Under the pieces are notes generated by a model that saw only the letters and a program-made list of their open reading frames with translations, was not told the DNA's origin and did not search any database. From Amoebophrya sp. A120 (taxonomy: Eukaryota > Protista > Dinoflagellata), in NCBI GenBank assembly GCA_905178155.1, contig CAJINV010000002.1:6850743-6914742 (forward strand): a DNA stretch of 64,000 nucleotides, given 5' to 3'. A program made the position numbers and the translations under genes. Of this stretch, positions 6,101-35,685 are shown piece after piece; position 1 is the stretch's first letter, and the number at the start of each line of letters is the position of its first letter.

Positions 6101-6333
6101 AGTATAATCGACTTTACATGTCGGCTTGTGTCCAACGTATTTACGTCAGGCGGTAGGTTTCTTGAAACCTACGGCAGGAAGCCTCTACATTCGGTTATGT
6201 CTTTACAGGCCAATGTCCCAGCACCAGAGTGCTTATCTCTGTAACGTCACTGCCTTTATTATAATTTTTCGACGAATCAAATCTGCGTGCCTATGTCGCA
6301 GCGCATAATCGGAGGATATATTTAGCTCTTGAT
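2049..6333 (+). repeat. Tandem segmental duplication, period 2136 bp (2049-4168 and 4185-6333)
   Basis: ORFs 1794-3149 and 4164-5285 are identical from AEAEASQSQ onward. The copies look identical over 2049-3295 vs 4185-5431 and then diverge with substitutions and indels. Confidence 0.95.
4164..5285 (+). pseudogene. 5'-truncated duplicate of the upstream low-complexity CDS
   Basis: Second unit of the tandem duplication; lacks the N-terminal part present in copy 1. Confidence 0.55.
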
Positions 6334-6350: not shown

Positions 6351-9300
6351 ATGCGCAACTGCATGTCTTGTGCGACGTCACAGATGGTGGGTTTCCCAAG
6401 TTGCGTTTTAGTTTTTTGCATCAGAGTTGTCGCCGTATCGACCTTTATCAAATGTAAAAATGTCTGGGTCTGGAAGATTCTGAGACTTGTCATGCATGTT
6501 TTGCCTGGGCCATGATGTCTGTGATGCAGGCCCTAGCATCACAGATTTTTTGAGGGCGTCGCGATGCCTTTTCCGCATGACAAATGCCCTCTCAGCGTAG
6601 CAAAAATCACACTCCCTTTGCTGCTCATGCAATACAGATTTTTTTGGAATCCAAATTCAGCATCACAAGTTGCATTCTTCCAGACCCAGACATTTTTACA
6701 TTTGATAACCTTGTTTGTTGCTGCGATCCAACATCCGCCGGGTGAGGGTCCGGGGCCGCCGGGATCATTGTCTGGAAGGAGCACACGGCAGACCGCTTTG
6801 CAGCAGGACGCTACTGGGGACGAGGAGGAGAACTACGATATGGGCGTTAGCACCTTCCGGCCGCGCCAGCGTCACCACGAAAAAACTTCTCCTCGCCAGG
6901 AAAGGCAGCTACAAGACGCGGCGGCCACGGAGGTGGACGACGGTCAATTTACGGACGAAGTTGCGGACGAAGATTTCGATGCGGATTATGGCTTGCTCAG
7001 ATGTTAAATCTCATTCTCAACTGTTACATAAAGCATCTGGATTTTGTCTCGCGTGAGCAGGAGCATGGGCAGCATACAGAGCTTTGCGCTTTTCGGTACA
7101 ATGAATTTCGCCATAATATGTGTAATTTCACTGTGGTTCTTTGGGGCTCGTCCGGATGAACTTGCTATGCGCGGCGATACTGCTAGACGCGAAGAGTATG
7201 CTGGCTATGGCTAGGTCATGCACTCGCTGTTGCACCTCCGATTTCCATTTCGTGTTGTAACGGCTGGGATTGTAACGCCTGCGTAAGTCATACGGATCAG
7301 TCCCTTTTTCTGGAAATCAACGCCGCGGCAGACAGTGGCAGTGCTATGCCCAGGATTTCGATATCTTCGCAGGAATCCTCGGAAACCGAAGCGGATAAAG
7401 AGAAAGAAACGGTCAGCACAATCGGGGATGCGGAACGCGACGCACCACACCGCTTCCAAGATGATCTACCAGATCTCAACACTGATCCTGCTCAGCAGGC
7501 GTCTGAGCTTACTTCGGCTTACCGGGAATACCTTAGTCGCTCTGTTGCTAGCATGCATGGTCGCAATATGATAATCCCCGACCCGGGGGAGACAGATGAT
7601 GATGCGCCGGGTTCTATGACTGTGCACAAGCTGTAGAAAGTAGTAGATCCCCTACGTCGCTAGCGCTACTACAATTACGGTTTTAAAGCATACGAGAGCT
7701 GCGAGTTCGAACAGGTGCTTTGATGTCCCTTGTGATATGCCTCGCCGATGGTAAAAACTAGGTGCGCACACTTTTCAAAAAACACTGCAGCTGGAAAAAG
7801 TAAAAGCTGCGCGTCGACGTTCTTTGTTCGTGCAAAATATGTATCTGCATTTTTGTACTGGAAATGTTGCTATTGCTTCATTTGATGTAGTTGCAGCTGT
7901 GGTGGACTGGATGAACCACTTCCCGGTCTTCATTGAATTTGCTACTTCTGTGAACATCAGCAACATCAAGGCGGGGGATTTACAAGTCTGCTTGTGCACC
8001 TTTCCCATAGTGAACGACGATAGCGCTCCTGACGACGTGCGGGCTTTCATCGAGAGAACACAGCGACATCATGCCGACGAACAGAAGCACGAAGAAGAGC
8101 AAGAACAACAAAATGAATATGAAAAACCATATCAAGACCAGTCCCGACGTACTACCAGTTACCTGAATGTGTGTCGGCACAGTCAGATAGTCGGCCAGGT
8201 GTTGCGTCACTTTTTCTTGCGCGACGAGAAAAGGCTGCAGTCTTACGCAGACAAGGAAAAATTTTACGTGCACTTCGAAACGGATCGCGGAGACGAGGAT
8301 GATGAGAATTTTTTAGCCGGCGGGGGTCCTCCTTTATTCCATGCTGAGGACGATCCGGGTGGACCGGGCCGCCCACTCCGCGAGCGAGTATTAACCGGGG
8401 ACGAGCTTAGTACTACCACATCCGGAGGTGAACAAATAGATTTTCGAAGTAGAAAGGATGACACAAAAGCACTGTTTACTGAAGCGGCTAGGCATCAGCT
8501 CGAGGAGAGGAGCTCTGGTAGTACTTCTTCAAGCAGCAAGCCGCAAGAACTGGGAGATTCTACCAGAACTACCACTACAAGCTCCTCCATCAAGATAGCC
8601 GGCGCGGAGAATTTGGCGCAGCAGGAACCTTCGGCAGTAATACCAGCGGGCAGTAGTGGTAGAAGTACAGCTTCTACCGGCGGTAGCTCTACTGGTAGCA
8701 CCCCTGCTTCGACGACTTCTCCCACCACGTCCTCCTCTTGGTGGGGCTCTAGTACCGCGTCTTCCTGGTGGAGTTGGGCAAAGGAAAAGGTAAAGCAAAA
8801 GGTTTACCAGCCCGTGGCGAATATGTTTTCGTCCTCCGGAGCAAGTAATGAAGTAGAAAATGCTGCAACTGCAGGTACAACAACGGCCCCGGTAGGCAAG
8901 AGTGAAGACATGGTTGATGCTGGGAGGAAAAAAGGAAATAATGATGACGACAAGAAGCAGAAATACCACAGTACTCGAAAAACCGTAATTAGCGGCTAAG
9001 TTGGTACGGCCCACAGAACAAGAGCAAGCGAATGAAACTTTTTCCGCACGACTGCTAGCTCCTGCATTCTCCGACTTCCCAAGCTAAGTGCTGCAGGATT
9101 GCTCTCCTTCTGCTTTTTCCCTGGGGGAAAAACCGCGCGCGTCCGTACTTGAGATTTTGCGTTTTATTCACTCGATGACGATGATGCGCAAATGCAAAAA
9201 CTCTGAGGCATAAGTTCCCTAATGGCACGTGCCATTAGGGAACTTATGTTTTTGCATTTTCGAAAAACATAAGTTCCCTATTGGCACGTGCAACTAGGGA

Positions 9301-12300
9301 ACTTATGGCTCGAGATTTTGGGTTTTTTTTACTCGATGATGCGCAAGTGGAAATGCAAAAACTCTGAAGCATAAGTTCCCTAATGGCTCGGGCCATTAGG
9401 GAGCTTATGTTTTTGCATTTTCGAAAAGCATAGAAATAGATATCCTATTTGAGCGCGTAAATAGGAAGCTACTCCTTTGATGAAGCTTTGGTTTTTTTCC
9501 GCAAAGGGAGCGCTTTGAAGCTTTGGCTTTTTTCCGCAAGAATAGAAGGGGAGCGCCTCGCCCTGGTGCAAGGGTTTTCATTTCTGCTCGTGTCATGGGG
9601 ACCACGCACGGCGCGACGCAATACTAGCTTTCTTGTGTTGTGGCTCGGAAAGAGTTACCACTTTAGCCGCTTATTACGGTATGCCGAGTAGCACGCAAGG
9701 GACATCAGCAAGAACAAGCTCGTCGAAAATAAATATCGCTAGCAAGCTTCCGAAGTTTCATTCCTCGGCGTACGAAGTGCACGAGGAATTGGCGCCCCTG
9801 ATGAACATGTTGCAAAATCTGTACACGTTTGACGAAGTCAGGCGCGTGTGGAGGCAGAAAACGAACGACGAACTAAGTCCAGCAGTGATGGAGGGAAACA
9901 CTAAACTCGCGCACACCGGCAACCATTTGTATGGTCGGGAGCTGACGCACCTGAAGCCACGCGAATCCTTCCACTCGCATAACGACGCCAGGCGCGACAC
10001 CGCGGTCACGGTAGACACGGGCGCTCCGCGGCATGGGGAGCTCGCCCGAAACGTGTTGCAGGAGGCAAAACTGGATCCGCACTTTTTGCCCTACATGGAA
10101 ACCGTTGTGAACGAATCTATGCATTTTTGCAAAAGAAGTATCGCTACACAGTACTACCAGTACTAGTGTAAAAATGAAATCGCATGTTGACCACGACGAG
10201 TTGGATCAAGTACAGAAACAGATTCCGGTAGGAATTTTGATTTGTCATGCATCACTCTGATTAGTACGAGCGCAATACTTGTTTTGCACTGGATAAAATT
10301 GGCGCACGGGCATTTCTTCGGCGAGGAGCTTGATGTTGCCGTTGCGCCAGCTCGCCCCGACCAGTCGGGTGAGCAGTATGGGATTCTCAAACGTACGCCT
10401 ACATTGCACGCTGTTGCACGATTTGTCACGCTGCTAATTCAGCATGTCACCCTCATCCTCCGCACGATGAGGCTGCTTCGCCTCCATGGCATGGAAATTA
10501 TGCCAAGATGAATACGTTCTAGATTTGTAGTAACGCGAGACGCGCATAAAAAAAACTCCCAACTGTTCACTTTTTCTGTTCTTGCATCGCAAAAGAATTA
10601 TGCAACAGCTATCAATGACGTTGCAACGCGTGCGAACTCCATAAGGAGGAAGTCGCTGGTCCTGCTACTTCTTCACCAGGAACACCAGGAGAAGACGACA
10701 AACACACATCATTTTTGGACCAGCAGAGCAGCAGCACGAAAATAAATGCTACAACTGCTATTGATAAGACCGTCGCCGGGACAGTCGGGAGGGTCCTCGG
10801 CAAAAAAAACGCAACGCGTAACAGAGCGATTGCTGGGGCCACAGCACCAGCTCCTGCAGCTCCTTCTTCACCATTAGCTTCATTGCCGTCGCGTGGAAAT
10901 AAAACTGCTGTTCGTAGGACGAGAGAAGCTACAAGAACTCCATCGACCCGCGTCACGCAAGAAATTGTGACCAGTGCTCGCGCTAGTAGAAAGATTGGCC
11001 GAAGCTCTACTGTAGATGAGGAGAAAACAAAAACAGACCACGAAGAGGAAGATGTTGAAGACGTTGTGACCACGAGTGATCGCGGCCCCAGTGAAAATGG
11101 CGTTCGACACCAACACGAACACAAGAATGACCGACCCGAAAAGCTGCTTTCCACTATGGCCGAACACGTGCTGCTGGACTACCCCGTCACGCTGAACTTC
11201 GACGCTGTAGCGGCGGCCGCGGAGGCCACCTTGACCAAAACGGTGACAGACAACCCGATGACTTGGAAAAAGATGACCGAAAAACTAGGGGAGTTGGCGC
11301 AACTCGGGCACAAAAAGAACGACGAAGGACGAGACAAGAGAAAAAGTGGCGGGGGACCACAATCACAAAGTAGAGTCTTGGACGTCGCGGACCAAGTCCA
11401 TTTCTCCGGTGTGCGATCTTCCACTGCTCCGGAGCACATTTGGTTCTTCGACCGCTTCGTGGTGAAACTGGTTCAGACGCAAGCGTTATCATAAGGAAAA
11501 ATCCCCCCTCCCCATATTGAAAACGTATCCGACTGAAAATTTGTGATGCGCATTTGTGACCTCAAACCCTGTCTGTCTTGCAAGAAGGCAAGTCCAGAGA
11601 GCGCCCCGCATTTTGCAGGCGGTTTGTGATGCTGTTGGGCTTAGAGCATGCACGTTTGTCATGCTAGGCGCCTACGTCAAAGCCTCTCGACTGAGGCTTA
11701 GCATATGCCTGCAGTCCTCTACTGCGAGACAAGTCTGATTTGTGTACGGAAATCCAGCAGCAGAAACTTCGTTTCGATATGGGGGGGGGATTTTTCCTTT
11801 TGATAAGCGTATGAGGACCAGATGTTCTGGTTCCGCGATCCGGATCTGCATATGTCCTTCCTCGAGAAACTGATCGACCACCTACGCTATGCATTGCATC
11901 AGTCATCTCGTACGACCCGTAAGTAGTAATTTTTATCTCAATCAGGCCAAAGTCAAAAAGCAAGCGCAAAAGCCTTTTTATCTTTTTTTCCTTATCGCTT
12001 TTTTCTAGTTACACAACGTCCCTACCGCCGCTTTCGAGCGAGCATTTGTAAACTTACTCTTTATGAGTATTTACAAAAAACTATCTGATCTGATCTGATC
12101 TGCATGAGCATGATGCATGATCCAACTCCGAGCTAAACCTAAATCAGCATGACAAATTCCATTTGAGGAAGATGTCATGCTGAGCTCCTAAATAGAATTC
12201 GCAATGTTGCACGTGAGTACTACTTCTAGTGCGTCGTCGATACTTTTGCAATGCATAAACGCCACCATCGGAATTCCCTCCTCACGCCCTTTTTCGGCCT

Positions 12301-15300
12301 CATCCGGGTGGAAAAGGTGCGCGACAGAAACGACCACATCGACGACTTCCGAATCAGAGTCAAAAACTCCACGACCCCGTCCGGCCCTCCCTCGGAAGCA
12401 GGAGCAGCACCTCTGGGAACTACAAAATCTGCCACAGAAGAACCTTCTGCTGCCGGAAGTGGTGGAAAAGATATTAACGGCGCACCACCAGTAGTGGTAG
12501 TAGAAGGCAACGCGCGCGGGAGATCATTCGAAACCACAGCGCCGCGGCCTGCTCTGTCCGAAGCGGAGCTGCTGCCAGCTGAGCGGCAGCGATACCGCAG
12601 GGATCGGAAGCGGATCGAGAAGGGGCTCGAGCGCTTGCCTTCTTGCGCCTACGTTGTCTTGCCAAACTTGTACTACGGTACTAAAACCGTTGCCAAGAGG
12701 ACGGTGCGTCGGGGTGGAGGCGCTGGACAAGGAAAAAAAAAGAAGATGTTGACAAGCTCTGGAAAGAACGGAAATGATAAAGGGAAGTCCGCCAGACCCT
12801 CATCCGCTCCACGCCCGTCAGTGGTCTCCGAGACGGGCAGTCAAGAAGAACAAATGGGATTTTCGAGGAGCACCACCTCAGAAGGTCAAGGTGAAGTAGG
12901 TTTTGTGAAAGAACAAGAAGTACAAAACGAAAACAAGGAGCAAACTTTATTTACAGCTCCGACGACAAGAGCATCAAGCGGTGAGGGCCACCTCCGAGGT
13001 CGACAGCGCCAGCGGGTTCGCGCCAGTACACTGCTGTTTGAGTTGAAGGGCAGCGCTGGCGACACCATCGACGAGGGGCCCCGCCGAGCCTGCGGCCTGA
13101 AACGGTGCGACGTCAACTGGGCGAAGGGGTCCCACAAATCTTTCGCGGAAAAGTACATCGCCCCCAAAGTCCGTACCCTGCTGAACTCAATGCACGACCT
13201 GCGGGACGACGCTGCGTGGAACTGGCGTCGGATGCGGCATGAAATTCGACATAACGGCGTTTGGGTTTTTTTGGGTACCTTACTGCACTGCAAAAGTATC
13301 GTTTGTACTAAGTTTGAGTACAACTACAAGTACTAGAAATTTCATTGCTACGTCGAATAAAGTTTCTCTTTCTCAAAAGGTGGAAAGAACAGAGTGCAAT
13401 TTGTAATGATGAAGAACGAAGAACATGAACAAGATTCAAAGCCAAATAAAATGGAAGACTTGCCATGCAATCTTGCAATTAGGACGACCGCGATACTTTT
13501 GCACAGGATTGAGATACGTGACCAAGCCCTTCGGAGCTGCTGCGTCCACCTTCTTCGGACGGATAGGGGATTCGCTTGCCCGGCCCTTTCGCGCTGCGTT
13601 CCGCTGGTTGTTCCCCGGAGTGCAGGGGGACGAGAATCAGGGTGAATCGTCTCCCTATCCAGGAAAAAACACCCATCCACATCCAATTTGTCATGCAAAA
13701 CATACATAAAACTCTGTGTTTGTCGTGCAAAAAATGGATGTGGATGGGTTTTTTTCTGTGGATACTCCCACGACGAACCACACAAAGAGCAGTACGACGT
13801 CTCCTGAAGTAGATCCGACGAAGAACGTCGCACTGAGTGGGCGGTGGAACAAGCCGACCTCTGGCACGGGGACGAGTGCTAATCCTAATGCAGCAGCTCG
13901 GGTGACGCCCTCGGTGATTTGGCAACAAAATGTGCGCGACATCTTGAAGTACTATCAAGTTTTGCCCCGCGTGGCCAGCACTTTCTTGAAGAAGAACATC
14001 CATTACGTTCACGGGGCCGTCGACGACCGCCAAGTAATGGTAAAATGGAAGGTGGATAAGGATCCGGTGTCTACCCTCGTTGCCAGAGCATCGGAAGCTC
14101 GCGAAGAGTTCTTGTACTCACATCAAGGATTTATTTTGGCAGGGCAGGAGCGAGTTGGTCCGGGTCGTACTCATGTTCATGCACGCGAAGAAGTGGTAGA
14201 AAGTGATGCTATGAAGAAGATCTTCTCCCCCGATAGCGCCGACGTCGCCAAGAAGTCCCAGCAAGTTCGCGACGTTGCAAACGTGACAATACTTCCGAAT
14301 GATACCCAGCGTCGTCTTGCTAAACATGTTGGGCACGACGGGGAGTCAACGGAAGGTTCGCGAGAAACCATCAGAAATCTGGACCTTGAGCGTCGACTGA
14401 AAAAAATGCGAAAAGAGGGAAAATTTGACACGCTCTGGGCCCTTGAAGAGTATGCCTTTGAGGAGAAGACGCTTTTGAACATGGACTTTCTTGTCAGTTC
14501 TGCCGCGGACAACTGGCTACTTGAAATATTTGGTAGGTTTTTTGGGGAGGCGCTGGGATTGTGGCGGGGGATTAATCACACTATCGTCTCCAGGGAGGAT
14601 CTTCTTCGTGTCGAGTCACAAGCGAGTACTATGTTCCGCCGGACTATTATCTCACGAAAAAAGTGTTAAGTACAGTTACACATTTGTTGGAGTTTCGGCA
14701 TCACAAATTTTCTCTGTGTGGCAGAGAAAACTTGTAATGCAAGGATCATAAGGGAAAATACGTAGGAAACGAGACTCGCAAGCATTTCCTGCATGACAAA
14801 GGTTGTCTGTCTTGCGGCTCCTGCAACACATGTACTAACTGTAACACTTTTTTCTTGCGATAACTATGCGCGACTTGCTGCAACCACTGGAGTTCCAAGA
14901 CTACGACTTCTACTATGGCGTTCTCAAACGTTACATTCTCACTCTCAACTGTTACATGGTTTGTCATGCAGAATTGCCTTCAGAATCCACACCATCAAGC
15001 TGCTTCGCATGACAAATTCTTAGAGGACCAAACAGGCTGATAACCGGCGCCAAATCTGTCATGCACGACGCGCAAGATCTCTCCTATCATTTTTGCCATT
15101 CTTGCATCGCAAATTCATGTACCAGTTGAGAATGTAACAGCTGAGAACGCCATATCTACGATGCTTTTCTCCGTTTCAATGGGTACGAAGCCACCACGCT
15201 GGCCGGTGCGGAAGGTGTACTGCAGAATCTTCTTGCTTCTTCTACTGTGGGCTCTTACGGCGAGCACTATAATATGTCGCGGTCTGCTCGTGCTCCCACG

Positions 15301-24300: not shown

Positions 24301-27300
24301 GGAGCAGGGTACCCATGGTGGCGCGGCGAATGGCGGCGCTGCAGGTGGATTGACGAACCTACTTGCCGAAGCCAGGTCAGACTGGTATGGCGTTCTCAAA
24401 TGTTACATTCTCAACTGTTACATAATTTGTCACGCAAACAAACTATCACTCTTAACACGATCAAGCCTTCTCCACAGTAAGGAAAAGATAATATAAGCGC
24501 CCGGGGATGAAGATATACTCGCGATACTTTTCGCGGTTCTGACCCTAGATCTCCTGCGACCGTAGCTGCTTGCGGCGACGGTGCAAAGGTTTTCGATATG
24601 GTGCAGTCGGGTATGCATGACAACTTCTCGACGCGCTAGATAGCATTATAATCTGCTCCAAACCTGTAAAGCAAAAGGCGCAAGAACGTTTTCCCTATTC
24701 ACTTTTGCCATTCATTACAAATTTTATGTAACAGTAGTTGAGAATGTAACGTTTGGGAACGCCATAACTGGAACTTCCAGCGGGTTTTGATGCAAGAGCT
24801 GCGAAAGCTGATACAGCAAATGGAGGTGCTCGAGTCCGGAAACCGAGCAGACAAACGGGGCTCGGAGGAAACAAGTGCAAAGAACAAAAAGCGGGGGCTA
24901 CACGACCCGCCCGCAGCGCACCAGCATCGACATCGACGCGAGGACCATCTTAGGGACATCGAACAGGGAACAGTAAACGCCGAGCAGAGCTTTCAAGGCG
25001 CGAGGCTGCGGGGCGCCTATTCAGGACCATTGCCTCGTGCTGGGACGACGAGTGACCATCAGGACAAGCAGGCTGCTGATAGTAATATTAACCGTGAGGG
25101 TCACCTACTACATCGTGATGACGATCAAAAATCTTCCGGTTATTTGTCGTCAACTACAACCACGGAAGTAGATCATAACAGTACAACTAATAGCACTAGT
25201 ACTTCTGTCGAAGCGAAAAAGTTAGGGGAGGCGTTGGGGTTTTCCGGAGCAAAGCTTTTCTTTATCGACCGCTTCACGTGGAAACAGATATTGCAGAGCG
25301 AACGTTTCATTTTCGAAACCAGCACGTCCCGTGGCGTTGAATTTTCAGAAAGCGTGTTGTGGAACAAGTTTCACCGCAGAAACCTCTTCCACGAACGCTG
25401 GGAAGATGATGAGGCAAGTAGGTCGAGGACCGCCCGTCGTGGAGATGAGGACGAAGAGGAGGACGATGCGCTTCTTGCAGTGGGCGCCCGTGACCGCGCT
25501 GCTGCAGACGTCGAACTCCTGGGTCGCTCTTCTTCTTCCTATTTTTCTACGTCCTCGGCGGCCACGATTCAAAACTTGAAAGACATGGCCTCTGGCGCGG
25601 TAAAGGCTGCAGCGACAGCGACAACTGGGAAGATGGGAATGGCGTCCTTCTCCACGGAGCAGTCCACGTCAGCAGCAGCACCTCGTACTAGTAGTAGCCC
25701 ACAGGCGGGAGGTAGAAGTTCTGATACCGGGCCCGGGCTCCAAAAAGCCATCGATGCCGAGTCCCGCGCAGACGTCGACGGGGAGAATACCGCCATGAAC
25801 CTTATTCCCGGGCAAAATACGTTCTTCGAGTCGATGTTGGGCCACCTAGAGCGGAGGAAGGGCAACTCTCTGCTGGTGCCGTTTTTCGGTGCGTGGCGGG
25901 TCACGCCACAAATGGATGTGGAGGACGATGATGATGCAGCTCCGGGTTATTTCGGTGCGAGGGTCGAGCAGGTGGAACACGGCCCCGGAGGACGGTCCAC
26001 CCCCGGGCACGCTTCGGGCGTGACTACCGAGGCCAGCTGCTACTACACCCTGATGCCAAACATTGCCTTCAAGCGCAAAAAGATCGAGCAGCAGGAGGCG
26101 ACGCGTCGGAAAAAGCAACAGCGCGAAGAACTTCGGAAAGCGAAGGAGAATAAAGCCCGTCGAGGTACTAGTGGGGGGGCAGCTACAGCTACTAGTACAT
26201 CAACAGCTACAGCTAATACGACAAAGAACACCAAGACCGCTTCATCACCTCTTGCAAGCGAGAACCCAGGAGGACAAGCTCCTGTGTTGATGTCACCGGC
26301 TTACAATCCAGCTGAGACTTGGTGGTGGAATAAACAGTGGGCGAGACGCAGAGAGCTGCAGACGGGGGACATCACTCCTGCAGAGGCTAATATCTGGCAC
26401 GATGCAGGAGTGCAGCCAGTGGAGGACTACATCAAGAACTCTTCCTCGCGATTATACGAGAATCTGCTTAAAAACGCAACACGAGGCCAGTCAGATGTAG
26501 AAAGTACGGCGTTTGGTCGTGGAGGTGCGCCGGGCGGAGCAGACAGACAGATTACAACAGCGAGCAGTTCTTTGTCACCACGACCTGCAGGCATCAAGAA
26601 GAACAAGCCCAACATCAGGAAGCAGAAATCGAAGACGTCGATCCTCTTCTTCGATACCAAAGGATCGGCGGGCGACACCATCGACACCGGCCCCCGGCGC
26701 GCTTGTGCCGTGTTGGAGCTCGGGCGAAAAGAAAATATCCTCACCTCTGCCTTTTTTGGGAGGGTGTACCAGGCCAAGGCATACTCAAAAGGAGTAAACT
26801 ACCAGTCTGTCGTCTCCACCCTGGCGACCCGGTTTCCCGGAATTAGGTACCGGGGGCTGAATACGAGTGATTTATTCGAATTCTTCCGCCTCGCGAAATC
26901 GGAGTGGCTCGGGCTGAATCAGACGAGTATCGGTGAGAGGTGCGCGGAGGAAATTGCGTTGGGGCATTTGCTATCAAATGCAAATATGTCTGGGTCTGTA
27001 AGGATGCAGCCTGTGATGCTACCTCTGGACTCTACATAAAATCTGTATTGCATGAACACCAAAAAGAAAAATAAAAGGTCCAGTTTTTTGCTACGCGGAG
27101 AGGGCACCATTTCTCATGTGGTATGAGCATCAGGAAGTCCTGCTCGCAGAGGCTGTGATGCTGCGGCATGCATCGCAGACATCATGGGTCGTGCAAAATC
27201 TGCATAACACCAGACCCAGACATATTTGCATTTGATATTTGCTGAGCCCCAATTGTACGGCCCAAACACGAGGACATCCGGACGTTCCCTACCACAAGCA

Positions 27301-30300
27301 TTCGGACCGCCTCGTTTTACCTGCAACCTTCTTCCAGCCCGCTGCGAAAACTCAGAACAAGTACAAGGGAACAGCCAGCAGCACGAGCAAGAAGAACGTG
27401 CTCAACAACGTGAGGAAAAGCTCCAGGGACGTCGAGCCAGGGCGGACAAGAACTACAACAACGGCGAGGATGAGCACAAATTCTGTACCAACTTCTGCGC
27501 AGTCGTTTGCTGAAACAAGAGGTCACAGTAGTACTCGAAAAAGTAGTTTTGTGCCTGATTCAGCCGATGATCCTGAAGATTTCCTCGACGACCACCTCCT
27601 GGAGTTAGAATTTGAAACCGCCCTGACTGGTGAAAAAGGGCTTCTGGAAGTAATGTCAGATGCAAAAGTACAGGATGTTGTCCTCGCGGAAAACAAAATG
27701 AAAGTAAAGAATGTCGCGGAAAACAAGATGAAAAACAGCGACCGAGAGAAACAGCAGGCAGAAGCTTATAAATCGCTATACGATCAAACGAAAGCGTATC
27801 TGAGTTTTGCCCATTTGTATTCGGGTACAGGAGCAGACGGAAGTAGTGGTTTAAGTGTTTTGATGAACAATCTTTTTCGCCATTGGGCCCGGGCCGCGGT
27901 GTCGAATGAAAAGGGTCCGGGTCTTGTTGTTAATCTCCGCATATCAACTGCAAGTATCGATCTGGGTGGTCTGGAAGATGAATGCGAATGTTCGTCATGC
28001 TTGCTAGTGGTCTAAAATGCACGCAGAGCATAAACATGTTTGCGGCGGCTTTCGTATTTCTCGCCTGCGTTAGAATGCCCTGGTCGAGAGACAAGATGGA
28101 TCACGTATCTTTTGCTGACTAGTATGCAAGACATATTCATATTTTCCAAAACCAAAAGCACCATAAGGACAAGAATAAGTAGAAATATCTTCGACAGATT
28201 TGCAGACTTCCAGACGACCAGGACATATTTGCATTTGATAACGCCTACCGGTTTACAATTCAATGGAGGACGCCCTAGCCGACGCCATCAGTGATTTTGC
28301 ACAGCGGATTATCCTCTATAAAAGCGATCCCGCATAATTACTAGACCTCCTGTCACGCAAATCTGCATGCCTAAAATGCTTCCACTCATCAAGAATGATG
28401 ATTGTGCGCAGTCCCATAGGGCGCATTTTGTTATTTTGATTTTCTCAATTTTTCCCTCTGGATATGATTTGAAATTTGTCATGATGTTCTGTATGATTGA
28501 GATGAAGATGGATGCACTCGCTAAACATCGGACTACAGAAGTGCGAGCCCCCGAGGCTCATCGTCATGCGCAACAGGAGCCAATAAAACAATTTACTGAC
28601 TTGTGTAGCAGATTCGACCCCATGTTGTAGTTTGTTAGTGGTGTGGGCCTTGTTTTTTAACCGGATACGGATGTCTGTGTGGGGGCGCCGAGTCGAGAAA
28701 GAGCTGCTCGAAAACGATACTTATTTCGATCGGGACTCGGGAGCGCGCATCGAAGAATTTTCTGTACCTATCAGCGAGCATGCCCGCGACGTCCTCTCGA
28801 GTAGAACCTCAAGGGACCACAGTGGCAAGAACGTCAGCAGTGGGCACGAGCTTCGCACCACGACATCGACCGATAGAACAGCGGTGGTGGAGAAACTTCG
28901 ACAATTGGGCGCCGACGACGAGGGGTCATTCTCATTTTGGCAAGATTTCGGGTTTGCGCAAATCAAGGAGCCTCCGGCTTCCAGGCGATTTTTTGTCGCT
29001 CGACCTCCGACAGGCACGGCTTATCAAGCTGGTGGAACTACCAGTAGTGCTGCAGCCTCTACTAGAGATAGAAATAGACGTGGTTCGACGTCTAGGAGGT
29101 CGAGGTCTAGCACTAGCACCTCCAGGCGGACGACGGAGGCTGAGGACATACTCTCGAGCGCTACATATTCACCCTCAGTACAACTAGGGCCAGAGGGCGA
29201 GGAATCTCCTGACGACCTGGCGGGCGATGGTGCCGGGGATCTTTCTGGCGACGCTGTGGAGAGCTTTCTGTGGCGGAGCCATCTGCAAACTGCTGGAACA
29301 TCTGCTTTGCCGCTCACAGCCTTGCTGGCAGCCTTGCGCGGACACTTCCACTCTGCTATGGAGGATGGCACACAAGAGCAGGGTCGCGCACCTGATCTCC
29401 AGAGTGGTGTAGTTGGCCGAGACGGTGGTGGTGCTCCCGAGCAGGACAACAAGGGCGGCCCTTTCTTTTATCATGATGAAGAGCGAAATAAAAATGCCAA
29501 ACAAAAAGAGCAGCAGGAGGAGTCCTACAACCGTGCTGGTCGTCGTGACCACCTAGACCTACGAGAAGTGGACTACACGAAGCGGTACCGTATCTCTATC
29601 TCAGTACACGAGCTCAACAACCAAACCGACGTCGACCAAGGGCCTCTACTCCCGGCCAGAGAATTCTTTCGCTTCGACGTAGTTCCTGTTGCTCCTGTGG
29701 TGAAGACCGATGCTGTATCGCGAGGAAAAATCGCCTCTCCTCATATTCAATCTCAAAGCGGAGACTTATTGTATTGCTGATTTGTGGCCACGACGCACCG
29801 CCTCTGTCTTGCAAGAGGGCAATGCCAGGGGTGTCCGTCGCATTGCGGGGTTGCCTCCTGATGTTGTCTCGGACCTTCGTGAGAGCCGTCTGCCATGCGA
29901 AGCAGCCATTCGCATGCGTCCCTTCTGCAGCAACTTCTCAGGATTTTTACAATCTGCCTGCGATTTATTTTCCCTACTTGTGCAGGACGAGTTACCAGAT
30001 AATTTGTGTACACAAGAAATCCGGTTCCGGCACCACAGATTTCGTTTTGAATTTGGGGAGGGGAGATGTTTCGTTTTGATATGTCGAAACGGCTGCGGCC
30101 GGAGGGGACCAGGACGCGATTGAAGATCTTCGCGACGGCGAATTCTTCCTAGCCACAGACAAGCGCTCTCGCTTTTTGCGCAGGTTCCTGCGCGAAAATG
30201 GCCAGTGGTGGTACCTTCCGAAAGGTGGTCCGTTTGTCGCGGAATACATCAACCGCAATTGCGTCAACTTCCACCTGAATAGCTGGGACTCTAGCTACCT

Positions 30301-33300
30301 GACCGGCGATGAGCCCTTCGCGCAGAGAATGCGCACCGCGTACAGCTATGGAACTGTCAGGATCGAAATTAACAAAATCGAAAAATTTGTGATGCATAAA
30401 ATGCATGACGCGAAACACGTGCGATGCAGAGCAGGCAAGTGAGGCCGATTGTAAGCCTGTTTGGGGTTATAGCTCGAGCTGCTAAAAAAGCAGCATGAGA
30501 TTATCAGTCTTCTTTGCCTAAACAGCATTACAAACTGTATTCAGGCACCACCAGAATTTGTCATGCGCCGCTTAGAAACTGGGTTCGAGCTGGAATCTAT
30601 TTTATGCATGACAAATCATTTCGATTTTGTCAATTTCGATTCTGACACTCCCATAACAGCGCAGCCCTGGAGAGAAGGACGACATCCTTGTTGAGCCTGA
30701 GCCCCCCAGGCGATATTAAAAGTGATGTAGTGGTCCACCAAGATGAAACGACTCTCAATCTTCAAAGTGCAGCCGGCGCGAGCACCACTTCACAACAGGT
30801 CGGTGGGACGAAAGAGCAGGCTTTCGACGTCGAGCAGCAGCTGCTGCTACCGGAGCAGGCTGCAAACCTGCACTACTTTGAAAAACTGGCCGAGTACGTG
30901 CAAGATCAGAACGGACCCCAGGAAGTGTTTCGCGATCTGGACTGGGAGGCCTTTGTTGCCTCGCACCTGCACCCGCACGCGTTTACACAACTGAACTTGA
31001 TCAGCAGCTTGATGGCGTTTGTGGCCTCCTACACAGTCGAGGCCCCTGAGATAGAGATAAGGCCCGCTGCGGGAGGATCATGGTCCTCATCATCATCATC
31101 ATCATCATCATCCTCCTCGGGCATATTATTTACAACTGCAAATACGTCTGCGATTGTGGATCTGAATGTGAATAGTTCACAACCTGCACCTCAAAAAGTA
31201 GCAGGTGTAGCAGAACCGAGGACCACCACACCGAGTTCGTCCGCCTCTGCAGGCGAAAAAATAGGTCCTTCATCTCCATCCAAAAACAATACTAGGAACA
31301 AGAACAGTAACGAACAGGAAGTTCTTACCGCGGCGGAGCAGGGAGCTCTTGGTGGAGACACAGCGAGCAGTCCGTCCTCATTCTCCCAAAGACCGACCCC
31401 TGCTGGCAAACCTGGGGGAAAAAATCCGAATTTAGAAGAGGAGCCTGCAATATTTGGGTTCGAAAATGAAAATAATACTGGCCCGATCATCTCCGAAGGT
31501 GAAAAGGGAAATAAGAACACGAACGCAATTTCGGGGCGCCGCGGCCCTGTGCTGGATGAAGTATCTCGCTTCAACATCACTGAAGAGGAAGACTGGTACC
31601 TCCGTGAACTGAAAGGCAAAATCAGGAACATATCCAACGAAAAAACTGTTTCACTGTGATGATTTTGCAAGAACCGCATCACAAGTTTGCTACACATGAC
31701 ACAGAAAATTTGCCATGCGCGTTTCCCAAAAGAAAACACGCTTGAAAGTCCAATGTCTTGCAGGTATAGCAAGAGAGACACTTTGGTGCTTCATTTTCTG
31801 CATCACAAGTTCACAGTGAAGCAGTTTTTTCTTGCGATAGAACACCACCAGAGAATATTGGAAGAAAGATATCCAAGACATCCTCCACAGCCAATTCCAG
31901 ACACTTTCGGACAACATTATGGAGTATCCAGGAAAAAACACCCATGATCCCCATCCAATTTGTCATGCAAAACGTGCATAAATTCCTTTGTTTGTCATGC
32001 AAAAAATGGATGGGGATGGGTGTTTTTTTCTGGATATGGAGACGGTCCACTTTGCCCAGATACCTATCCCCGGAGGACTCTACACAGATAGTGAGGAAGA
32101 CTATATCACAAGAAAAAGTGTAGTTAAAAACCAACGTTAAACGGTTTTATTCACAGACTCCAGTCATGCATCGCATCAAATGTAGCCCAATTGCATGCTA
32201 ATATGCAAAACAAATTTTCTTGTTTTTGGCACGTTTGGTGATGCATTGCTGCGTCACAAATTCGGTTAACGTCATAAGTATAACACTTTTTCCTGCGATA
32301 GACTACGACAAATTGCGAGACTTTCTTGCCGCTGATCTCGACTTCCTGGAGGGCAGCCCTTTTCAACTGTCAGACTACAGCCTTGTGTTTTCCCTTGTAT
32401 CAGAGGTGGAGGACGCACGTGCGTTGTTGCAAAATGTGTCTTCTGAGCGGCAAGGTGGAGGATTAAACTCTAATCAAAGCGAGGAGACGACGAGTACGCT
32501 CTTCGAGTCCCTTCCCCCCGCCGCTGCGTTTCTGCGAGAAAAATTCGAGCGCGAGTTTGAAGTGAACCTTTTCGCGGACGTATAAGAGTGAGCAAGTCCC
32601 CCTCCCCCACATTTGTAGGGCATGAACAGCAAAGCTATTACAAGCATTGACAGGAGTGCAGATTTTGCATGCCAAATTCACACAGGAAGATCGCAGTTGT
32701 AGCGTTGGGCGGGCTCCTGCCAGAATCTGTCATGCAAATAGAAATAGCGAGAAGAAGCAAAGCAAAGACGGCTGCTGGATTTGGCATTTTGCATGACAAA
32801 TGAAGGGGACGCCCTTAGCCTTCCAACGTGACAAATGAGGGGGAGAGGAGTTCTTGTGCACTCTCATAAGAGGACTCGAGTCTTCTCAAGAAGCAAATTA
32901 CCAGTGCACTGCAACAGCTGACAGAAACCACCGCACGTGCCCTCGCGATAGCAGATGAGGCTTTCCCTTCCTTGAATCGCAATCGACGCCTCAAAGCATT
33001 TGAGAGGGTCAGGCATGGCACCTCGCGCATCCGGGTCCGAGCCGACCCCAGCACCTGTGCGCGGAGAATACTAACGAAGCACAACCTGCTCGGCGGAGCG
33101 AGGGGCAAGGAGCAGGACCAGGAAGAGAAGACAAACTACACGAAGACGAACGCAAAATCTTCATCAAGTGCCTCGTCTTACCAGGGCAAAGCTGGTAACA
33201 CAAAATCAGGAATGCGAAAGAAAACGCCGTACGATATTCCGGTGCACTTCTACTACCAAAATGGAAAGCTGGGTCGTCGTCGTGATGAAGAAGTAGAAGC

Positions 33301-35685
33301 TACAAAGGGCGGAAGCACTAGAAAGGCTGCGCCTCAACTAGCTGCAAGTGACGACGAGGAGGAGATGCAAACTTTTATATCCAGGAAAAAACACCCATCC
33401 CCATCCAATTTGTCATGCAAAACAAGCATAAAATCCACTATTTGTGATGCAAAAAATGGATGGGGATGGGTGTTTTTTCCTGGATGTTTTACCAAGGTGT
33501 GCCTAACACTGGAGTTGGGTCTTTTGGACTTTGGTCTGCGCTTCGAGAAGAGCTCCCTCTCCCGGATAGCATCGGTGAACCTGAAGCAACACGGCATTTT
33601 TGAGCGCACATTCAGCGCAGAAGTGTGGGACCGGTTTCGCAATTTTTGGTCCAGCGGTGGTGCTGATGTTGATCATGGGGAAAATACAAATAGAACATTC
33701 AAATCCGTTAGATGGCATGCTAGCAAGTATGAGACCAAACTCGCGGAGAATATGGACTCGATACGGAACGATTGGGATTGGCGTGGCGTGACACACGACG
33801 TGGCGTCACTCATGCGAAAAGGCTTCGCCCACACTGCGGAAAAGGGATGGAATGTTACCAAAAAAACCTTCCAAGGAATAAAAAACTTGTTTTCATCACC
33901 CGGACAATGGTGGTCCGTCTCGAGCTCAGGAGGATCTGCATCTGCCTCTAGTACTGCCGACCGAGACGAGGATATGGAAGCGTCAGGTTGGAAATAATTG
34001 ACAAAGTTGAAAGGATTGGCGGCGAAGATGCATAAAACCGACGAGGCCCACTTGATCCATAACTTCTATAGAGGCATAATGCCGCTCTTAGAAATTATGG
34101 TTCCAGTAGCGGCATGAACGCCGCCAATGCTTCACTTCTGGTGATGATGCCATCATCAGAAGTGAAGTCTTGGAGGCGTTGCTTGTGTTGCACGATCAGA
34201 AGAGCAACAAGACTAGCATTCCAGGCAAGCCGAGCCATGTCAGGATGTCAGGCTCAGGTCTTTCCAGACGCGGGCAGTCCGTCTCTCACTCTGTCTAATA
34301 AAGCAAAAGCAAGTAGGGCTTTTGTCATGCTTTTCCGCACCCCCATTGCCCATGAGCCTGGGCAGGCTTACAATCTGCCTCGGTTGCCTCCAGTGCAACG
34401 CCGACACGACTTTGCGCACTGGTGCATGTTATGCATGATAAAAGGTTCACTTTCAACCTTGAGATTTTTCAACCTGTCGCTGCCATAGAGAAGGCCGAAG
34501 CTGAGGAGAGCGACGAGTCGTCAGGACCAGCAGGCTCGAAACAGCAGGGTCCTATGGGTCGGGAGGAGGAAGTTCAAGTTATGGTGGATTGCAAATATGT
34601 CCTTGTCCTCTGGGTCTGCTGGATTTACTGTGGTCATGCAAAACGAAAACTTCTTCAAGCATAAAAAGATCTGTGAAGATGCCTGACCCCGAGTCGTTTT
34701 CGCCTTTTTTGTGATGTTCGAAGCCTGTGTGTCGTGCAAAATTATACCTAGTACGGTTACGGTTACCGTAATAAGATCCGAAAAACTTCTTTTCACGGTG
34801 CTTTCGTGTGCTGCAAAGGGCCGCTTTATTGTCACGCAACATGCAGCATGGCAAATCTTCGCGCGCTTTCAACGAACTTTATTCAGACCCAGACATGAGT
34901 CCTTATTTCCATTTGATAGACGTAGAGCGGCAGCAGCAAACACTCTTCCACAATCGAACAAACGGGAAGGCACCAGCCCCAGCCGCGGCCGACCTGAAAC
35001 AGAAGAGAAAAGGCGGCGATTTTTGGGCATCAGAAACCAACTCCTGGAACACGATATTTACCCCGATGGACTTGGCTTCGAGAGACATCGAAGATATTCG
35101 GCTCCGGCAAGAAATCGACGCGCACGTCACCGATTGGGGCGCTTTCAGTGAGTTTCTTCGGTTCCCCGCTTCGCAGCAGAAGCAAGTGGGTGCCGCGAAC
35201 ACGAAATTTTCCGATCCCGGGTCGGTCGGTGTAGGAGATCTGTTGCACAGTAAGGGTGTTGATTATACTTTCGTGTCCAACTATCCCACGAAAAAACTGT
35301 TTCACTGTGAACTTGCGATGCATGGAATGGAACACAAAAATATTTGTCTTGCTACACATGCAAGACATTGGATTTTTAGGGCTGTTTTCCCTTGGGAATC
35401 AATTGCGCATGGCAAATTTTTTGTGCCATGTGTAGCAAACTTGTGATGCAAATCTTGCAAAATCATCACAGTGAAGCAGTTTTTTCGTGCGATACCAACA
35501 CGGGAAAGTGGTCTTGGGACGGTTTCCCGTCGCGAAACTACGCGCTCACCGATCGCCTCTATCCAGACGCGCAGCCGCCCCTCGTCTACGCGAATCGAAT
35601 GCGCACCTGGCTTCTTGACTTCGATTCTGTATTGAAACTAGACCCATGGCGTGACGCGCTGAACAACGCGACTTCTACGCGATAA
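6351..35685 (+). CDS. Giant (~6,139 aa) protein with two tandem, insertion-rich phosphatidylinositol-phosphate kinase (PIP5K-like) domains; 43 exons, 42 introner-type introns; hydrophobic N-terminus
   Basis: Manual removal of 42 elements (10,915 bp in total) from 29,335 bp leaves 18,420 bp, divisible by 3, and every junction stays in frame. Domain 1 motifs: DRFVVK, RNSLLTPFFGLIRV, YVVLPNL, FELKGS, DLEFLQARKVWDYSLIV, FGIVDF, PSIYADRLRNF. Domain 2 motifs: DRFTWK, GNSLLVPFFGAWRV, YTLMPNI, FDTKGS, DLDFLE..SDYSLVF, LGLLDF, PLVYANRMRTW. The start ATG (6351, 6363 or 6384) is uncertain. Confidence 0.8.
6446..6707. mobile_element. Introner family A
   Basis: TIR tatcaaatgtaaaaatgtctgggtctggaag / cttccagacccagacatttttacatttgata; DR acctt/acctt; join reads VAVSTLFVAA. 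Confidence 0.95.
6987..7292. mobile_element. Introner family B (degenerate)
   Basis: tatggcttgctcag...ctgcgtaagtcata; DR cggat/cggat; join DADQSLF. Confidence 0.85.
7549..7889. mobile_element. Introner, orphan and degenerate
   Basis: tagcatgcatggtcgcaata...tattgcttcatttgatgta; DR gttgc/gttgc; join RSVAAVVDW. Confidence 0.75.
8972..9690. mobile_element. Introner-like element containing a palindrome array
   Basis: tactcgaaaaaccgtaattagcggctaagttggta...taccactttagccgcttattacggtatgccgagta; removing 717 bp at the shared agta joins KYHSSTQG; no clean 5-bp DR. Confidence 0.7.
9209..9409. repeat. Three 40-bp palindromic units (9209-9248, 9268-9307, 9370-9409)
   Basis: cataagttccctaatggcac|gtgccattagggaacttatg is a perfect palindrome; the other two copies carry a few substitutions. 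Confidence 0.92.
10118..10295. mobile_element. Introner family C
   Basis: tatgcatttttgcaaaag...ttttgcactggata; DR gaatc/aaatt (diverged); in-frame join to AHGHFF. Confidence 0.8.
10377..10643. mobile_element. Introner family B
   Basis: tatgggattctca...tgcgaactccata; DR agcag/aggag; in-frame join. Confidence 0.85.
11487..11805. mobile_element. Introner family D
   Basis: tatcataaggaaaaatcccccc...gggggatttttccttttgata; DR agcgt/agcgt; join TQAYEDQ. Confidence 0.95.
11888..12257. mobile_element. Introner family C
   Basis: tatgcattgca...tgcaatgcata; DR tacgc/aacgc; join DHLRHHRNSLL (PIP5K motif). Confidence 0.9.
13276..13508. mobile_element. Introner family C (ends approximate)
   Basis: tgcaaaagtatcg...cgatacttttgca; best in-frame DR ttggg/ttgag; join VFL.YVTK. 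Confidence 0.7.
13656..13764. mobile_element. Introner family E
   Basis: tatccaggaaaaaacacccatcc...ggatgggtttttttctgtggata; DR ctccc/ctccc. Confidence 0.95.
14648..14862. mobile_element. Introner family F
   Basis: tatctcacgaaaaaagtgtta...taacacttttttcttgcgata; DR actat/actat. Confidence 0.92.
14914..15154. mobile_element. Introner family B
   Basis: tatggcgttctca...tgagaacgccata; DR tctac/tctac. Confidence 0.95.
16299..16595. mobile_element. Introner, B-like
   Basis: tataacatgctcagg...cctgagggcgtcata; DR ccgga/ccgga; join WLPEAG. Confidence 0.88.
17664..18005. mobile_element. Introner, degenerate A-like (ends approximate)
   Basis: Internal ctgggtctgggaag / ttccagacctcccagac arms; removing 346 bp at gatttatgcat/gatttttgcat is in frame. 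Confidence 0.7.
18202..18398. mobile_element. Introner family C
   Basis: tatccaatgcaaaag...cttttgcgatgcata; DR cccgt/cccgt. Confidence 0.9.
18468..18577. mobile_element. Introner family E
   Basis: tatccacgaaaaaaagacccat...atgggtctttttttgtggata; DR gctcg/gctcg. Confidence 0.95.
18601..18886. mobile_element. Introner, orphan and degenerate
   Basis: tatgacattgcacaactac...gtagttcttgtgaactcggata; DR gcgcc/gcggc; join SRRLERM. Confidence 0.75.
18935..19169. mobile_element. Introner family B
   Basis: tatggcgttctcaa...ttgagaacgccata; DR cctgt/cctgt. Confidence 0.95.
19229..19556. mobile_element. Introner family D
   Basis: tatcgtaaggaaaaatcccccctcccc...ggggaggggggatttttccttttgata; DR atccc/atccc. 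Confidence 0.95.
20287..20477. mobile_element. Introner family C
   Basis: tatgcatttttgcaaaagtt...aacttttgcagagcata; DR gctgt/gctgc. Confidence 0.9.
20795..20906. mobile_element. Introner family E
   Basis: Perfect TIR tatccaggaaaaaacacccatccccatcca; DR gtcta/gtcta. Confidence 0.96.
21307..21467. mobile_element. Introner family C
   Basis: tatgcattgcaaaagta...tacttttgcagatgata; DR gtgcg/gtgcg. Confidence 0.92.
22268..22410. mobile_element. Introner family E (diverged)
   Basis: tattccctgaaaat...attttcagggaata; DR lost (aggac/tgatg) but removing element +5 nt is in frame. Confidence 0.82.
22507..22662. mobile_element. Introner family C
   Basis: tatgcattg...caatgcata; DR cgcct/cgcct. Confidence 0.92.
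22717..22839. mobile_element. Introner family E
   Basis: tatccaca...tgtggata; DR aaact/aaacc. Confidence 0.88.
22986..23235. mobile_element. Introner family B
   Basis: tatgggattctcaaa...tttgagaactccata; DR tggtt/tagtt. Confidence 0.9.
23662..23804. mobile_element. Introner family C
   Basis: tatggattgcaaaagtatcgcactcgta...tacgagtgcgatgcttttgcacaggata; DR cctac/cctac. Confidence 0.95.
24147..24264. mobile_element. Introner family E (inverted interior)
   Basis: tatccacacaaaaaaaaccatccccatcc...ggatggggatgggtgttgttttttccttgata; DR cgact/caact. Confidence 0.9.
24386..24766. mobile_element. Introner family B (enlarged, 381 bp)
   Basis: tatggcgttctcaaatgttacattctcaact...agttgagaatgtaacgtttgggaacgccata; DR actgg/actgg. 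Confidence 0.95.
26972..27237. mobile_element. Introner family A
   Basis: tatcaaatgcaaatatgtctgggtctg...cagacccagacatatttgcatttgata; DR tttgc/tttgc. Confidence 0.95.
27942..28240. mobile_element. Introner family A
   Basis: tatcaactgcaagtat...atatttgcatttgata; DR ccgca/acgcc. Confidence 0.88.
28310..28667. mobile_element. Introner, orphan
   Basis: tatcctctataaaagcgatccc...gggccttgttttttaaccggata; DR cggat/cggat; join QRMSVW. Confidence 0.82.
29716..30081. mobile_element. Introner family D
   Basis: tatcgcgaggaaaaatcgcctctcc...ggggaggggagatgtttcgttttgata; DR tgctg/tgtcg. Confidence 0.88.
30347..30655. mobile_element. Introner family G (long ~55-bp TIR)
   Basis: tatggaactgtcaggatcgaaattaacaaaatcgaaa...tttcgattttgtcaatttcgattctgacactcccata; DR acagc/acagc. 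Confidence 0.94.
31631..31839. mobile_element. Introner family F
   Basis: tatccaacgaaaaaactgtttcactgtga...tcacagtgaagcagttttttcttgcgata; DR gaaca/gaaca. Confidence 0.95.
31925..32036. mobile_element. Introner family E
   Basis: tatccaggaaaaaacacccat...atgggtgtttttttctggata; DR tggag/tggag. Confidence 0.95.
32104..32300. mobile_element. Introner family F
   Basis: tatcacaagaaaaagtgt...acactttttcctgcgata; DR gacta/gacta. Confidence 0.92.
32581..32868. mobile_element. Introner, D-like
   Basis: tataagagtgagcaag...cttgtgcactctcata; DR ggacg/agagg (diverged); removal +5 nt is in frame. Confidence 0.8.
33378..33486. mobile_element. Introner family E (3' end ggatg instead of ggata; read-through is open)
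   Basis: Family E TIR; DR tttta/tttta; 114 nt with no in-frame stop. Confidence 0.93.
33973..34487. mobile_element. Introner family G
   Basis: tatggaagcgtcaggttggaaa...ttttcaacctgtcgctgccata; DR gagga/gagaa; contains the apparent stop at 33995-33997. Confidence 0.9.
34580..34918. mobile_element. Introner family A (degenerate)
   Basis: Arms with tctgggtctg / cagacccaga; ends tat...ata; DR caagt/gacgt; join VQVERQQ. Confidence 0.82.
35282..35494. mobile_element. Introner family F (interior inverted relative to the 31631 copy)
   Basis: tatcccacgaaaaaactgtttcactgtga...tcacagtgaagcagttttttcgtgcgata; DR ccaac/ccaac. Confidence 0.95.

Follow-up and report, generated by a model that had tools for sequence, protein, structure and literature searches.

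A probable single gene with two PIP-kinase-like domains in Amoebophrya sp. A120, with introner elements as its 39 recognised introns

The closest described system to the locus considered here comes from the same strain. More than 60% of the introns of Amoebophrya sp. A120 are non-canonical, and 29,850 are repeated 'introner elements', whose inverted repeats, 8–20 nt long, begin with TAT in A120 and finish in a run of A, and which carry direct repeats of 3–5 nt across their borders and form hairpins; U1 small nuclear RNA was not detected (Farhat 2021, BMC Biol 19:1, PMC7789003). Here we analyse a stretch of 64,000 nt from this strain (contig 2, 6,850,743–6,914,742, referred to below as the window; genome-wide searches covered the 115.5-Mb assembly), which appears to hold one very long gene for a pair of phosphatidylinositol phosphate kinase (PIP kinase) domains, interrupted throughout by such elements. 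As introners have been published for the same strain, the phenomenon here is not a discovery. The additions are modest: the gene-level reconstruction, the cut register, a second class of element, and elements lying in both orientations inside one open frame.

Compared with the introners of Amoebophrya A25 and A120 (PMC7789003), nothing at this locus differs in kind. Inverted repeats with TAT, direct repeats, hairpins, many families and the lack of GT–AG ends are common to both. What is added is a fixed register of −1/+4, where the border position had been left unknown, and a second class with TACTCG termini, for which the length excised agrees with a duplication of TA. Introners derived from miniature inverted-repeat transposable elements (MITEs) in Micromonas, Aureococcus, Polarella and other dinoflagellates (Gozashti 2022, PMC9860276) are similar in that non-autonomous elements with terminal inverted repeats (TIRs) and target-site duplications create introns, and in that the element is removed with one copy of the duplication. 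Like MITEs and non-autonomous TIR transposons, the TAT-class elements described here carry TIRs and a target-site duplication of fixed length, here 5 nt, and lack coding capacity. The MITE-derived introners of those other eukaryotes reportedly have canonical GT/GC–AG sites built partly from the duplication, and are orientation-dependent. At the present locus, in contrast, the observed ends are CT..AT and GC..TA, and the stop-free frame contains elements in either orientation.

The best-supported model of the gene is the following:

7839–35685, + strand: gene model, from ATG 7839 to TAA 35683–35685, stop-free after excision

It has 40 exons, 39 introns and a coding sequence of 17,841 nt, which translates into 5,946 amino acids (aa) with zero internal stops. 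The frame was built by removing the element plus 5 nt at 38 TAT...ATA elements downstream of 7839, and 717 nt at a further element at 8972–9690. All 39 recognised introns are introner elements, and 7839–35685 opens without any canonical intron, as a first-pass annotation made from the sequence alone had claimed. That annotation joined many open reading frames (ORFs) into one frame starting at 6351, with 42 introns, all of them introners, and 6,139 aa. The single frame stands for 7839–35685 (5,946 codons) and fails for 6351–7636, which ends in a stop and has no introner join; the figures of 42 and 6,139 were not reproduced, the count from ATG 7839 being 39 introns and 5,946 aa. The statement that every intron is an introner is borne out for the 39 recognised ones, except that one is of a different class and needs the removal of 717 nt, not 724. 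We consider it likely that 7839–35685 is a single very long gene with two PIP-kinase domains, invaded about 40 times by TIR elements, each of which is excised with one copy of its duplication.

When 39 elements are each removed with 5 nt, and the element at 22268–22410 is left in, the region resolves into four open blocks:

6351–7633, + strand: 235 codons after removal of two introners
7755–8996, + strand: 414 codons
9546–22429, + strand: 2,863 codons, 18 introns
22398–35682, + strand: 2,813 codons, 19 introns

Taking out 148 nt at 22268–22410, which has a perfect 14-nt TIR, joins the last two blocks. A query with the longest exon (24772–27036) found one public protein, of 468 aa ('unnamed protein product, partial [Amoebophrya sp. 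A120]'). It aligns to 26092–26971 plus 27243–27766, and hence uses the excision at 26972. Public-protein look-ups with 7839–8996, 7187–7633 and exon 17 found no protein. The public protein set contains only this partial fragment of the gene, with neither the catalytic exon nor the 5' blocks represented, in agreement with the earlier expectation that gene finders would miss or fragment it. The model offers a concrete correction for a locus nearly missed by public annotation. More generally, very long genes of this genome can be reconstructed by the rule of removing the element and a single target duplication, which could recover many hidden genes of Amoebophrya.

The elements were identified using a strict scan, in which a hit had to show an exact direct repeat of 5 nt, ends of the form TA..TA and, without gaps, matches at 12 or more of 16 TIR positions. 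This gave 19 elements in 6351–35685 and four more elsewhere in the window, compared with 0 in the reversed sequence and one in total in 20 shuffles (about 0.05 each). When TIR scoring was gapped and one repeat mismatch was allowed the set grew to 31, and nine further degenerate copies were located exactly at the remaining breaks in the ORF chain. The final set in the span is 40 TAT...ATA elements of 109–515 nt (median 241). Their direct repeats are exact over 5 nt in 24 cases, have one mismatch in eight, and are degenerate (two or more mismatches) in eight. A TAT start is present in 39 of the 40 (13281 starts with TAC) and an ATA end in 38 (not at 13510 or 33486). Five multi-copy families recur within the gene, with members in both orientations. 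For the 110-nt family, at least 810 candidate copies were counted across the genome, 40 scored copies being 92–97% identical. Another 22 elements are singletons within the window, a status that refers to the window and not to the genome. In both informative elements the predicted fold has the TIRs paired as its basal stem (z = −3.1 and −3.3). The 40 elements are listed here, with DR denoting direct repeat:

6446–6707, +: introner in the first block, 262 nt, exact DR ACCTT, perfect 24-nt TIR
6987–7292, +: introner in the first block, 306 nt, exact DR CGGAT
10118–10295, +: introner, 178 nt, degenerate DR GAATC/AAATT, +5 keeps frame
10377–10643, +: introner, 267 nt, DR AGCAG/AGGAG
11487–11805, +: introner, 319 nt, exact DR AGCGT
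11888–12257, +: introner, 370 nt, DR TACGC/AACGC
13281–13510, +: degenerate introner, about 230 nt, ends set by eye against family consensus, +5 keeps frame, weakest evidence class
13656–13764, +: 110-nt-family introner, exact DR CTCCC
14648–14862, +: introner, 215 nt, exact DR ACTAT
14914–15154, +: introner, 241 nt, exact DR TCTAC
16299–16595, +: introner, 297 nt, exact DR CCGGA
17664–18022, +: degenerate introner, 359 nt, no DR (AGATT/ACCGA), TIR TATGCATTGCAA/TTGCATCTGATA, +5 keeps frame
18202–18398, +: introner, 197 nt, exact DR CCCGT
18468–18577, +: 110-nt-family introner, exact DR GCTCG
18601–18886, +: introner, 286 nt, weak TIR, DR GCGCC/GCGGC, frame kept
18935–19169, +: introner, 235 nt, exact DR CCTGT
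19229–19556, +: introner, 328 nt, exact DR ATCCC
20287–20477, +: introner, 191 nt, RNA-contig excision of 196 nt
20795–20906, +: 110-nt-family introner, RNA-contig excision of 117 nt
21307–21467, +: introner, 161 nt, exact DR GTGCG
22268–22410, +: introner parting the two paralogous halves, 143 nt, perfect 14-nt TIR, RNA-contig excision of 148 nt
22507–22662, +: introner, 156 nt, exact DR CGCCT, at least 39 nt retained in one RNA contig
22717–22839, +: introner, 123 nt, DR AAACT/AAACC
22986–23235, +: introner, 250 nt, DR TGGTT/TAGTT
23662–23804, +: introner, 143 nt, exact DR CCTAC
24147–24264, +: 110-nt-family introner in opposite orientation, DR CGACT/CAACT
24386–24766, +: introner, 381 nt, exact DR ACTGG
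26972–27237, +: introner, 266 nt, exact DR TTTGC, excision used by the public partial protein
27942–28240, +: introner, 299 nt, DR CCGCA/ACGCC, frame kept
28310–28667, +: introner, 358 nt, exact DR CGGAT, weak TIR
29716–30081, +: introner, 366 nt, DR TGCTG/TGTCG, frame kept
30347–30655, +: introner, 309 nt, exact DR ACAGC
31631–31839, +: introner, 209 nt, exact DR GAACA
31925–32036, +: 110-nt-family introner, exact DR TGGAG
32104–32300, +: introner, 197 nt, exact DR GACTA
32581–32868, +: introner, 288 nt, DR GGACG/AGAGG, frame kept
33378–33486, +: 110-nt-family introner in opposite orientation, exact DR TTTTA, within genomic ORF 32870–33994
33973–34487, +: introner, 515 nt, DR GAGGA/GAGAA, TIR score 16, contains the apparent stop 33995–33997
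34580–34918, +: degenerate introner, about 339 nt, right end a clear family match, left end degenerate, +5 keeps frame
35282–35494, +: introner of the same family as 31631 in opposite orientation, 213 nt, exact DR CCAAC

The apparent stop at 33997, which had earlier been assigned to an element, indeed sits 22 nt inside 33973–34487. At 33378–33491 the 110-nt-family introner is stop-free and its excision of 114 nt is in frame; retention would add 38 aa and leave the protein unbroken.

RNA contigs were placed on one 6-kb stretch, 17600–23599. They come from runs X4 and X5, which are from one sample and are probably RNA. Three joints have exactly the predicted lengths, namely 20281>20478 (196 nt), 20789>20907 (117 nt) and 22266>22415 (148 nt), with intron ends of GC..TA, GT..TA (ambiguous) and CT..AT, respectively. 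The last joint is unambiguous: in contig 13 of X5, positions 22267–22414 are removed, in frame, and the two halves are fused. Contig 6 of X4 terminates exactly at 22266. The register at 22268–22410 is thus a cut 1 nt before TAT and 4 nt after ATA. At 20281>20478 (both=4) the fifth DR base of the right copy stays in the product, which fits the same −1/+4 register. These two junctions, at which the repeats are imperfect, settle the cut register, a point left open in the original paper (Farhat 2021). The gene is probably weakly expressed, and ten further junctions within the 6 kb are without contig coverage.

The joint at 22266>22415 bears directly on whether there is one gene or two. Two tandem paralogous PIP-kinase genes, both of about 2,800 aa and parted at 22268–22430, would fit with the halves being collinear paralogs of almost equal length, and the unspliced frame does stop at TGA 22430, with ATG ATG at 22410–22415. 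This division is nevertheless quite improbable, given that in one RNA contig 22415 directly follows 22266, in frame, that a second stops exactly at 22266, and that the element between them has the same kind of TIR as other spliced elements. It could also be proposed, as X4 and X5 are only guessed to be RNA, that the skipped forms are DNA from cells in which the elements have been excised from the genome. We give this very little credence, since X4 and X5 contain about a third of the words of the stretch, against 0.89 in DNA runs, and since the published annotation and paper take these introns from RNA-seq.

RNA contigs also pile up at 18800–19600 (summed depth up to 182), on short terminal-repeat pieces of two introner families. 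As they run into unrelated sequence, they derive from other copies of the elements, and element-derived RNA appears abundant.

The product of the gene is predicted to contain two PIP-kinase-like domains, as the first-pass annotation had suggested:

11399–20955, + strand: PIP-kinase-like domain 1, aa about 797–2757 of the model, from Pfam, PIP4K2B structures and motifs
25237–35610, + strand: PIP-kinase-like domain 2, aa about 3680–5922, from collinear blastp, local alignment and ESM Atlas

The motifs of domain 1 are HFSG..DRFVVKL, NSLLTPFFG, FELKGS (13037), WDYSLI (19659), GIVDF (20175) and IYADRLRNF (20929). Those of domain 2 are GFSGAKLFFIDRFTWK, NSLLVPFFG, FDTKGS (26650), SDYSLV (32370), GLLDF (33518) and VYANRMRTW (35584), the last within PLVYANRMRTW at 35578, which had been noted earlier and is confirmed to lie in frame in the last exon. 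Pfam and PDB searches were run exon by exon, and blastp between the halves used the locally spliced product. Exon 17 (19563–20285) matches PF01504 with 34.2 bits, against a cut-off of 27 bits, over profile positions 138–244; a genome profile scan scores the same locus at 29.6 bits. The exon also matches PIP4K2B structures (1e-5), via ...FLQARKVWDYSLIV.... The halves give four collinear blastp matches (E 3e-8, 3e-4, 6e-4 and 0.04), and local alignment pairs KLQNFFRALDRDLEFLQARKVWDYSLIV with KLRDFLAADLDFLEGSPFQLSDYSLVF. Exon 27, in the second half, finds PIP5K clusters in the ESM Atlas (0.90–0.92); a search there with exon 37 found nothing. By alignment, the conserved Lys and Asp motif positions (VVK/TWK, DYSL, G(I/L)(V/L)DF) are present in both halves. 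Judged by sequence, the halves are collinear paralogs, each with a full PIP-kinase motif series spread over about 2,000 aa with long inserts.

In relation to PIP5K and PIP4K (PF01504; PIP4K2B structure 1BO1), both halves keep the G-loop, an IIK-like Lys, SLL..FFG, DLKGS, MDYSLL, a GIID-like motif and the C-terminal YAxRF. They differ in that there are two domains per chain, both of which contain inserts totalling over 1,600 aa and have degenerate G-loops, and in that only one exon exceeds the Pfam threshold. The spacing from KGS to DYSL is about 1,300 aa in the first half and about 1,190 aa in the second, and about 17% of the 5,946-aa protein lies in low-entropy windows. A tandem, insert-laden pair of this kind would be an unusual architecture. 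PIP5K and PIP4K enzymes act as dimers, so that the tandem pair may function as a covalent pseudo-dimer. The genome has at least four further canonical PIP5K loci, which makes the gene described here a divergent extra copy. Other PIP5K loci, which lie in long single ORFs and score much higher against Pfam (up to 149 bits), are at C7:2212825-2214222, C2:8127027-8128484, C7:3161024-3162496, C3:7950145-7950570 and C13:393649-394800.

One of the 39 introns does not follow the TAT...ATA pattern:

8972–9690, + strand: TACTCG...CGAGTA element, 719 nt, about 40-nt TIRs, internal palindromic 40-mers

Its ends are fixed to the base by at least five other genomic copies (a family of at least six). Applying the +5 rule here was tried and gave the wrong frame; the in-frame excision is 717 nt, which corresponds to the element with one flanking TA. 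Three other copies lie between long ORFs, and in each a removal of the element length L minus 2 joins the flanking frames (207/349, 228/408 and 391/500 codons), while L and L+5 do not. All four informative copies are thus in phase with L−2, for which the chance expectation is about 1–4%. The TA flanks of the class are deduced from these four copies.

An alternative view is that the gene begins at ATG 9681, with 8972–9690 intergenic and 7839–8999 a separate gene of 386 aa. The frame 7755–8996 does close at TAA 8997–8999, ATG 9681 is in frame with the downstream ORF, and the +5 rule fails at this element. The stop at 8997–8999, though, sits 25 nt inside the element, and ATG 9681 is part of a right end conserved in all copies; in two other copies this ATG does not share the phase of the ORF that follows. 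In addition, the four informative copies lie between long same-strand ORFs whose phases fit one excision length class, and no separate public protein was found for 7839–8996. We regard a start at 9681 as unlikely. The base-exact ends, the agreement of phase in four of four copies and the out-of-phase ATG lead us to take 8972–9690 as a second-class intron, from which the element and one target duplication (TA) would be removed; within the reading of the whole gene this is likely. The TACTCG class would follow the same logic of restoring the pre-insertion sequence with another duplication length, and, together with the cut register, it narrows the possible splicing mechanisms.

Inside the element, at 9148–9432, a perfect palindrome of 40 nt (CATAAGTTCCCTAATGGCACGTGCCATTAGGGAACTTATG) occurs three times, placed in tandem units of 161 nt. 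TACTCG copies elsewhere in the genome vary from 719 to 1,160 nt, apparently by the number of these units.

Upstream of ATG 7839 the following features are present:

6351–7636, + strand: block B1, ATG 6351 to TAG 7634–7636, 235 codons after removal of two introners, no public protein found
7637–7838, + strand: gap from the B1 stop to the first ATG of the long frame, with several GT..AG pairs of the right length class, e.g. 7622–7790

B1 could belong to one gene running from ATG 6351 to 35685, with an intron somewhere in 7450–7900 connecting it to the long frame. It is genuine coding sequence, contains two introners and lies upstream on the same strand at a distance of only 200 nt. The frame also stays open with many possible introns whose length is 1 mod 3, including GT..AG 7622–7790 and an 8-nt direct-repeat pair at 7551–7872. 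Against this, the gap is without a TIR/DR element and its sequence is unique in the genome, TAG closes B1 where ATG 7839 opens the next frame, and the intron lengths implied by the first-pass annotation give at least 26 stops. The single gene from 6351 is accordingly rather doubtful. B1 is most likely either a separate small upstream gene or a set of 5' exons linked to the long frame through an ordinary intron that is no introner. As any join would use a non-introner intron, the statement that all 42 are introners fails either way.

Several candidates for the join were rejected. A path search from ATG 6351 under strict rules stalls at the stop at 7634, and relaxed searches add chance pairs only. 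Direct-repeat, TIR and GT–AG solutions for 7633–7755 were enumerated, and none is an element. Both the 8-nt repeat pair (7551–7872) and an inverted pair of 10 nt (7622/7990) are close to what chance would give.

The stops in question lie between 7298 and 10117. The intron total of 10,915 nt given in the first-pass annotation exceeds the 9,867 nt of the 40 elements by 1,048 nt, which we read as 324 + 724 (the latter as 719 + 5; the split is deduced). Wherever the 324 nt are taken out, their removal together with 724 nt leaves the 26 or more stops, a result that the annotation itself had named as refuting its model. Its coding length of 18,420 nt is divisible by three since the two frame errors cancel in the sum.

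A number of observations weigh against the reading of 7839–35685 as one double-PIP-kinase gene with about 40 excised elements. Junction evidence consists of three RNA joints and one from annotation, the other 35 being deduced from the open frame; the joint depth is 2–4, and the RNA nature of X4 and X5 is a guess. Contig 13 of X5, which fuses the halves, continues for 39 nt into the next introner (22507–22545), unspliced. Splicing is therefore not always complete, and the introns of one transcript are removed independently. Accurate excision, as claimed earlier, is supported, but the high-fidelity process is overstated: it is deduced from the open frame, RNA data cover only three to four junctions, and this contig shows retention. 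Raw-read RNA-seq runs X7 and X8 (2026, same species label) gave 0 reads on the 6 kb at 95% likeness; these runs may represent a different strain, or the gene may not be expressed in them. The join at 8972–9690 rests on phase agreement in four copies, not RNA. Eight elements have degenerate direct repeats, and the ends of three degenerate ones (13281, 17664, 34580) were set partly by eye. For the second half, Pfam and PDB searches at exon level gave no PIP5K match, and the degenerate G-loops of both domains make the predicted kinase activity uncertain. The start at ATG 7839, and with it the 5' end of the gene, is putative.

On the basis of these observations, we propose that about 40 non-autonomous TIR transposons (introner elements) inserted into the coding sequence, and that each would leave the RNA with one copy of the target-site duplication, 5 nt for TAT...ATA and TA for TACTCG...CGAGTA, thereby restoring the pre-insertion reading frame. 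The TIRs would pair into a hairpin and bring the two exon ends together; where the direct repeats are imperfect, the observed cut falls 1 nt before TAT and 4 nt after ATA. Given that both orientations occur in the stop-free frame, the elements are probably recognised by way of a symmetric stem instead of directional intron signals. The product, from ATG 7839 to TAA 35685, would be a tandem pair of divergent PIP-kinase domains. We suggest only tentatively the stronger form of this proposal, in which the hairpin alone sets a structure-measured cut, in either orientation and without fixed terminal dinucleotides, and the product is a covalent tandem PIP-kinase pair, a built-in dimer. If true, each transposon family would bring its own exact 'undo' signal, and the gene would tolerate about 40 insertions.

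Outside the gene, strict TAT..ATA elements with exact 5-nt repeats are present at 48200–48450, 51093–51313, 52485–52914 and 61437–61545, in neighbouring + strand genes, so that the neighbours carry introners too. Upstream, 2046–6160 is a tandem duplication with a unit of about 2.14 kb, the blocks being 92–100% identical at a spacing of 2,130–2,149 nt. Judging by acceptors of canonical appearance (...CATGCAG|G), this may be an upstream gene that has been duplicated and has ordinary introns.

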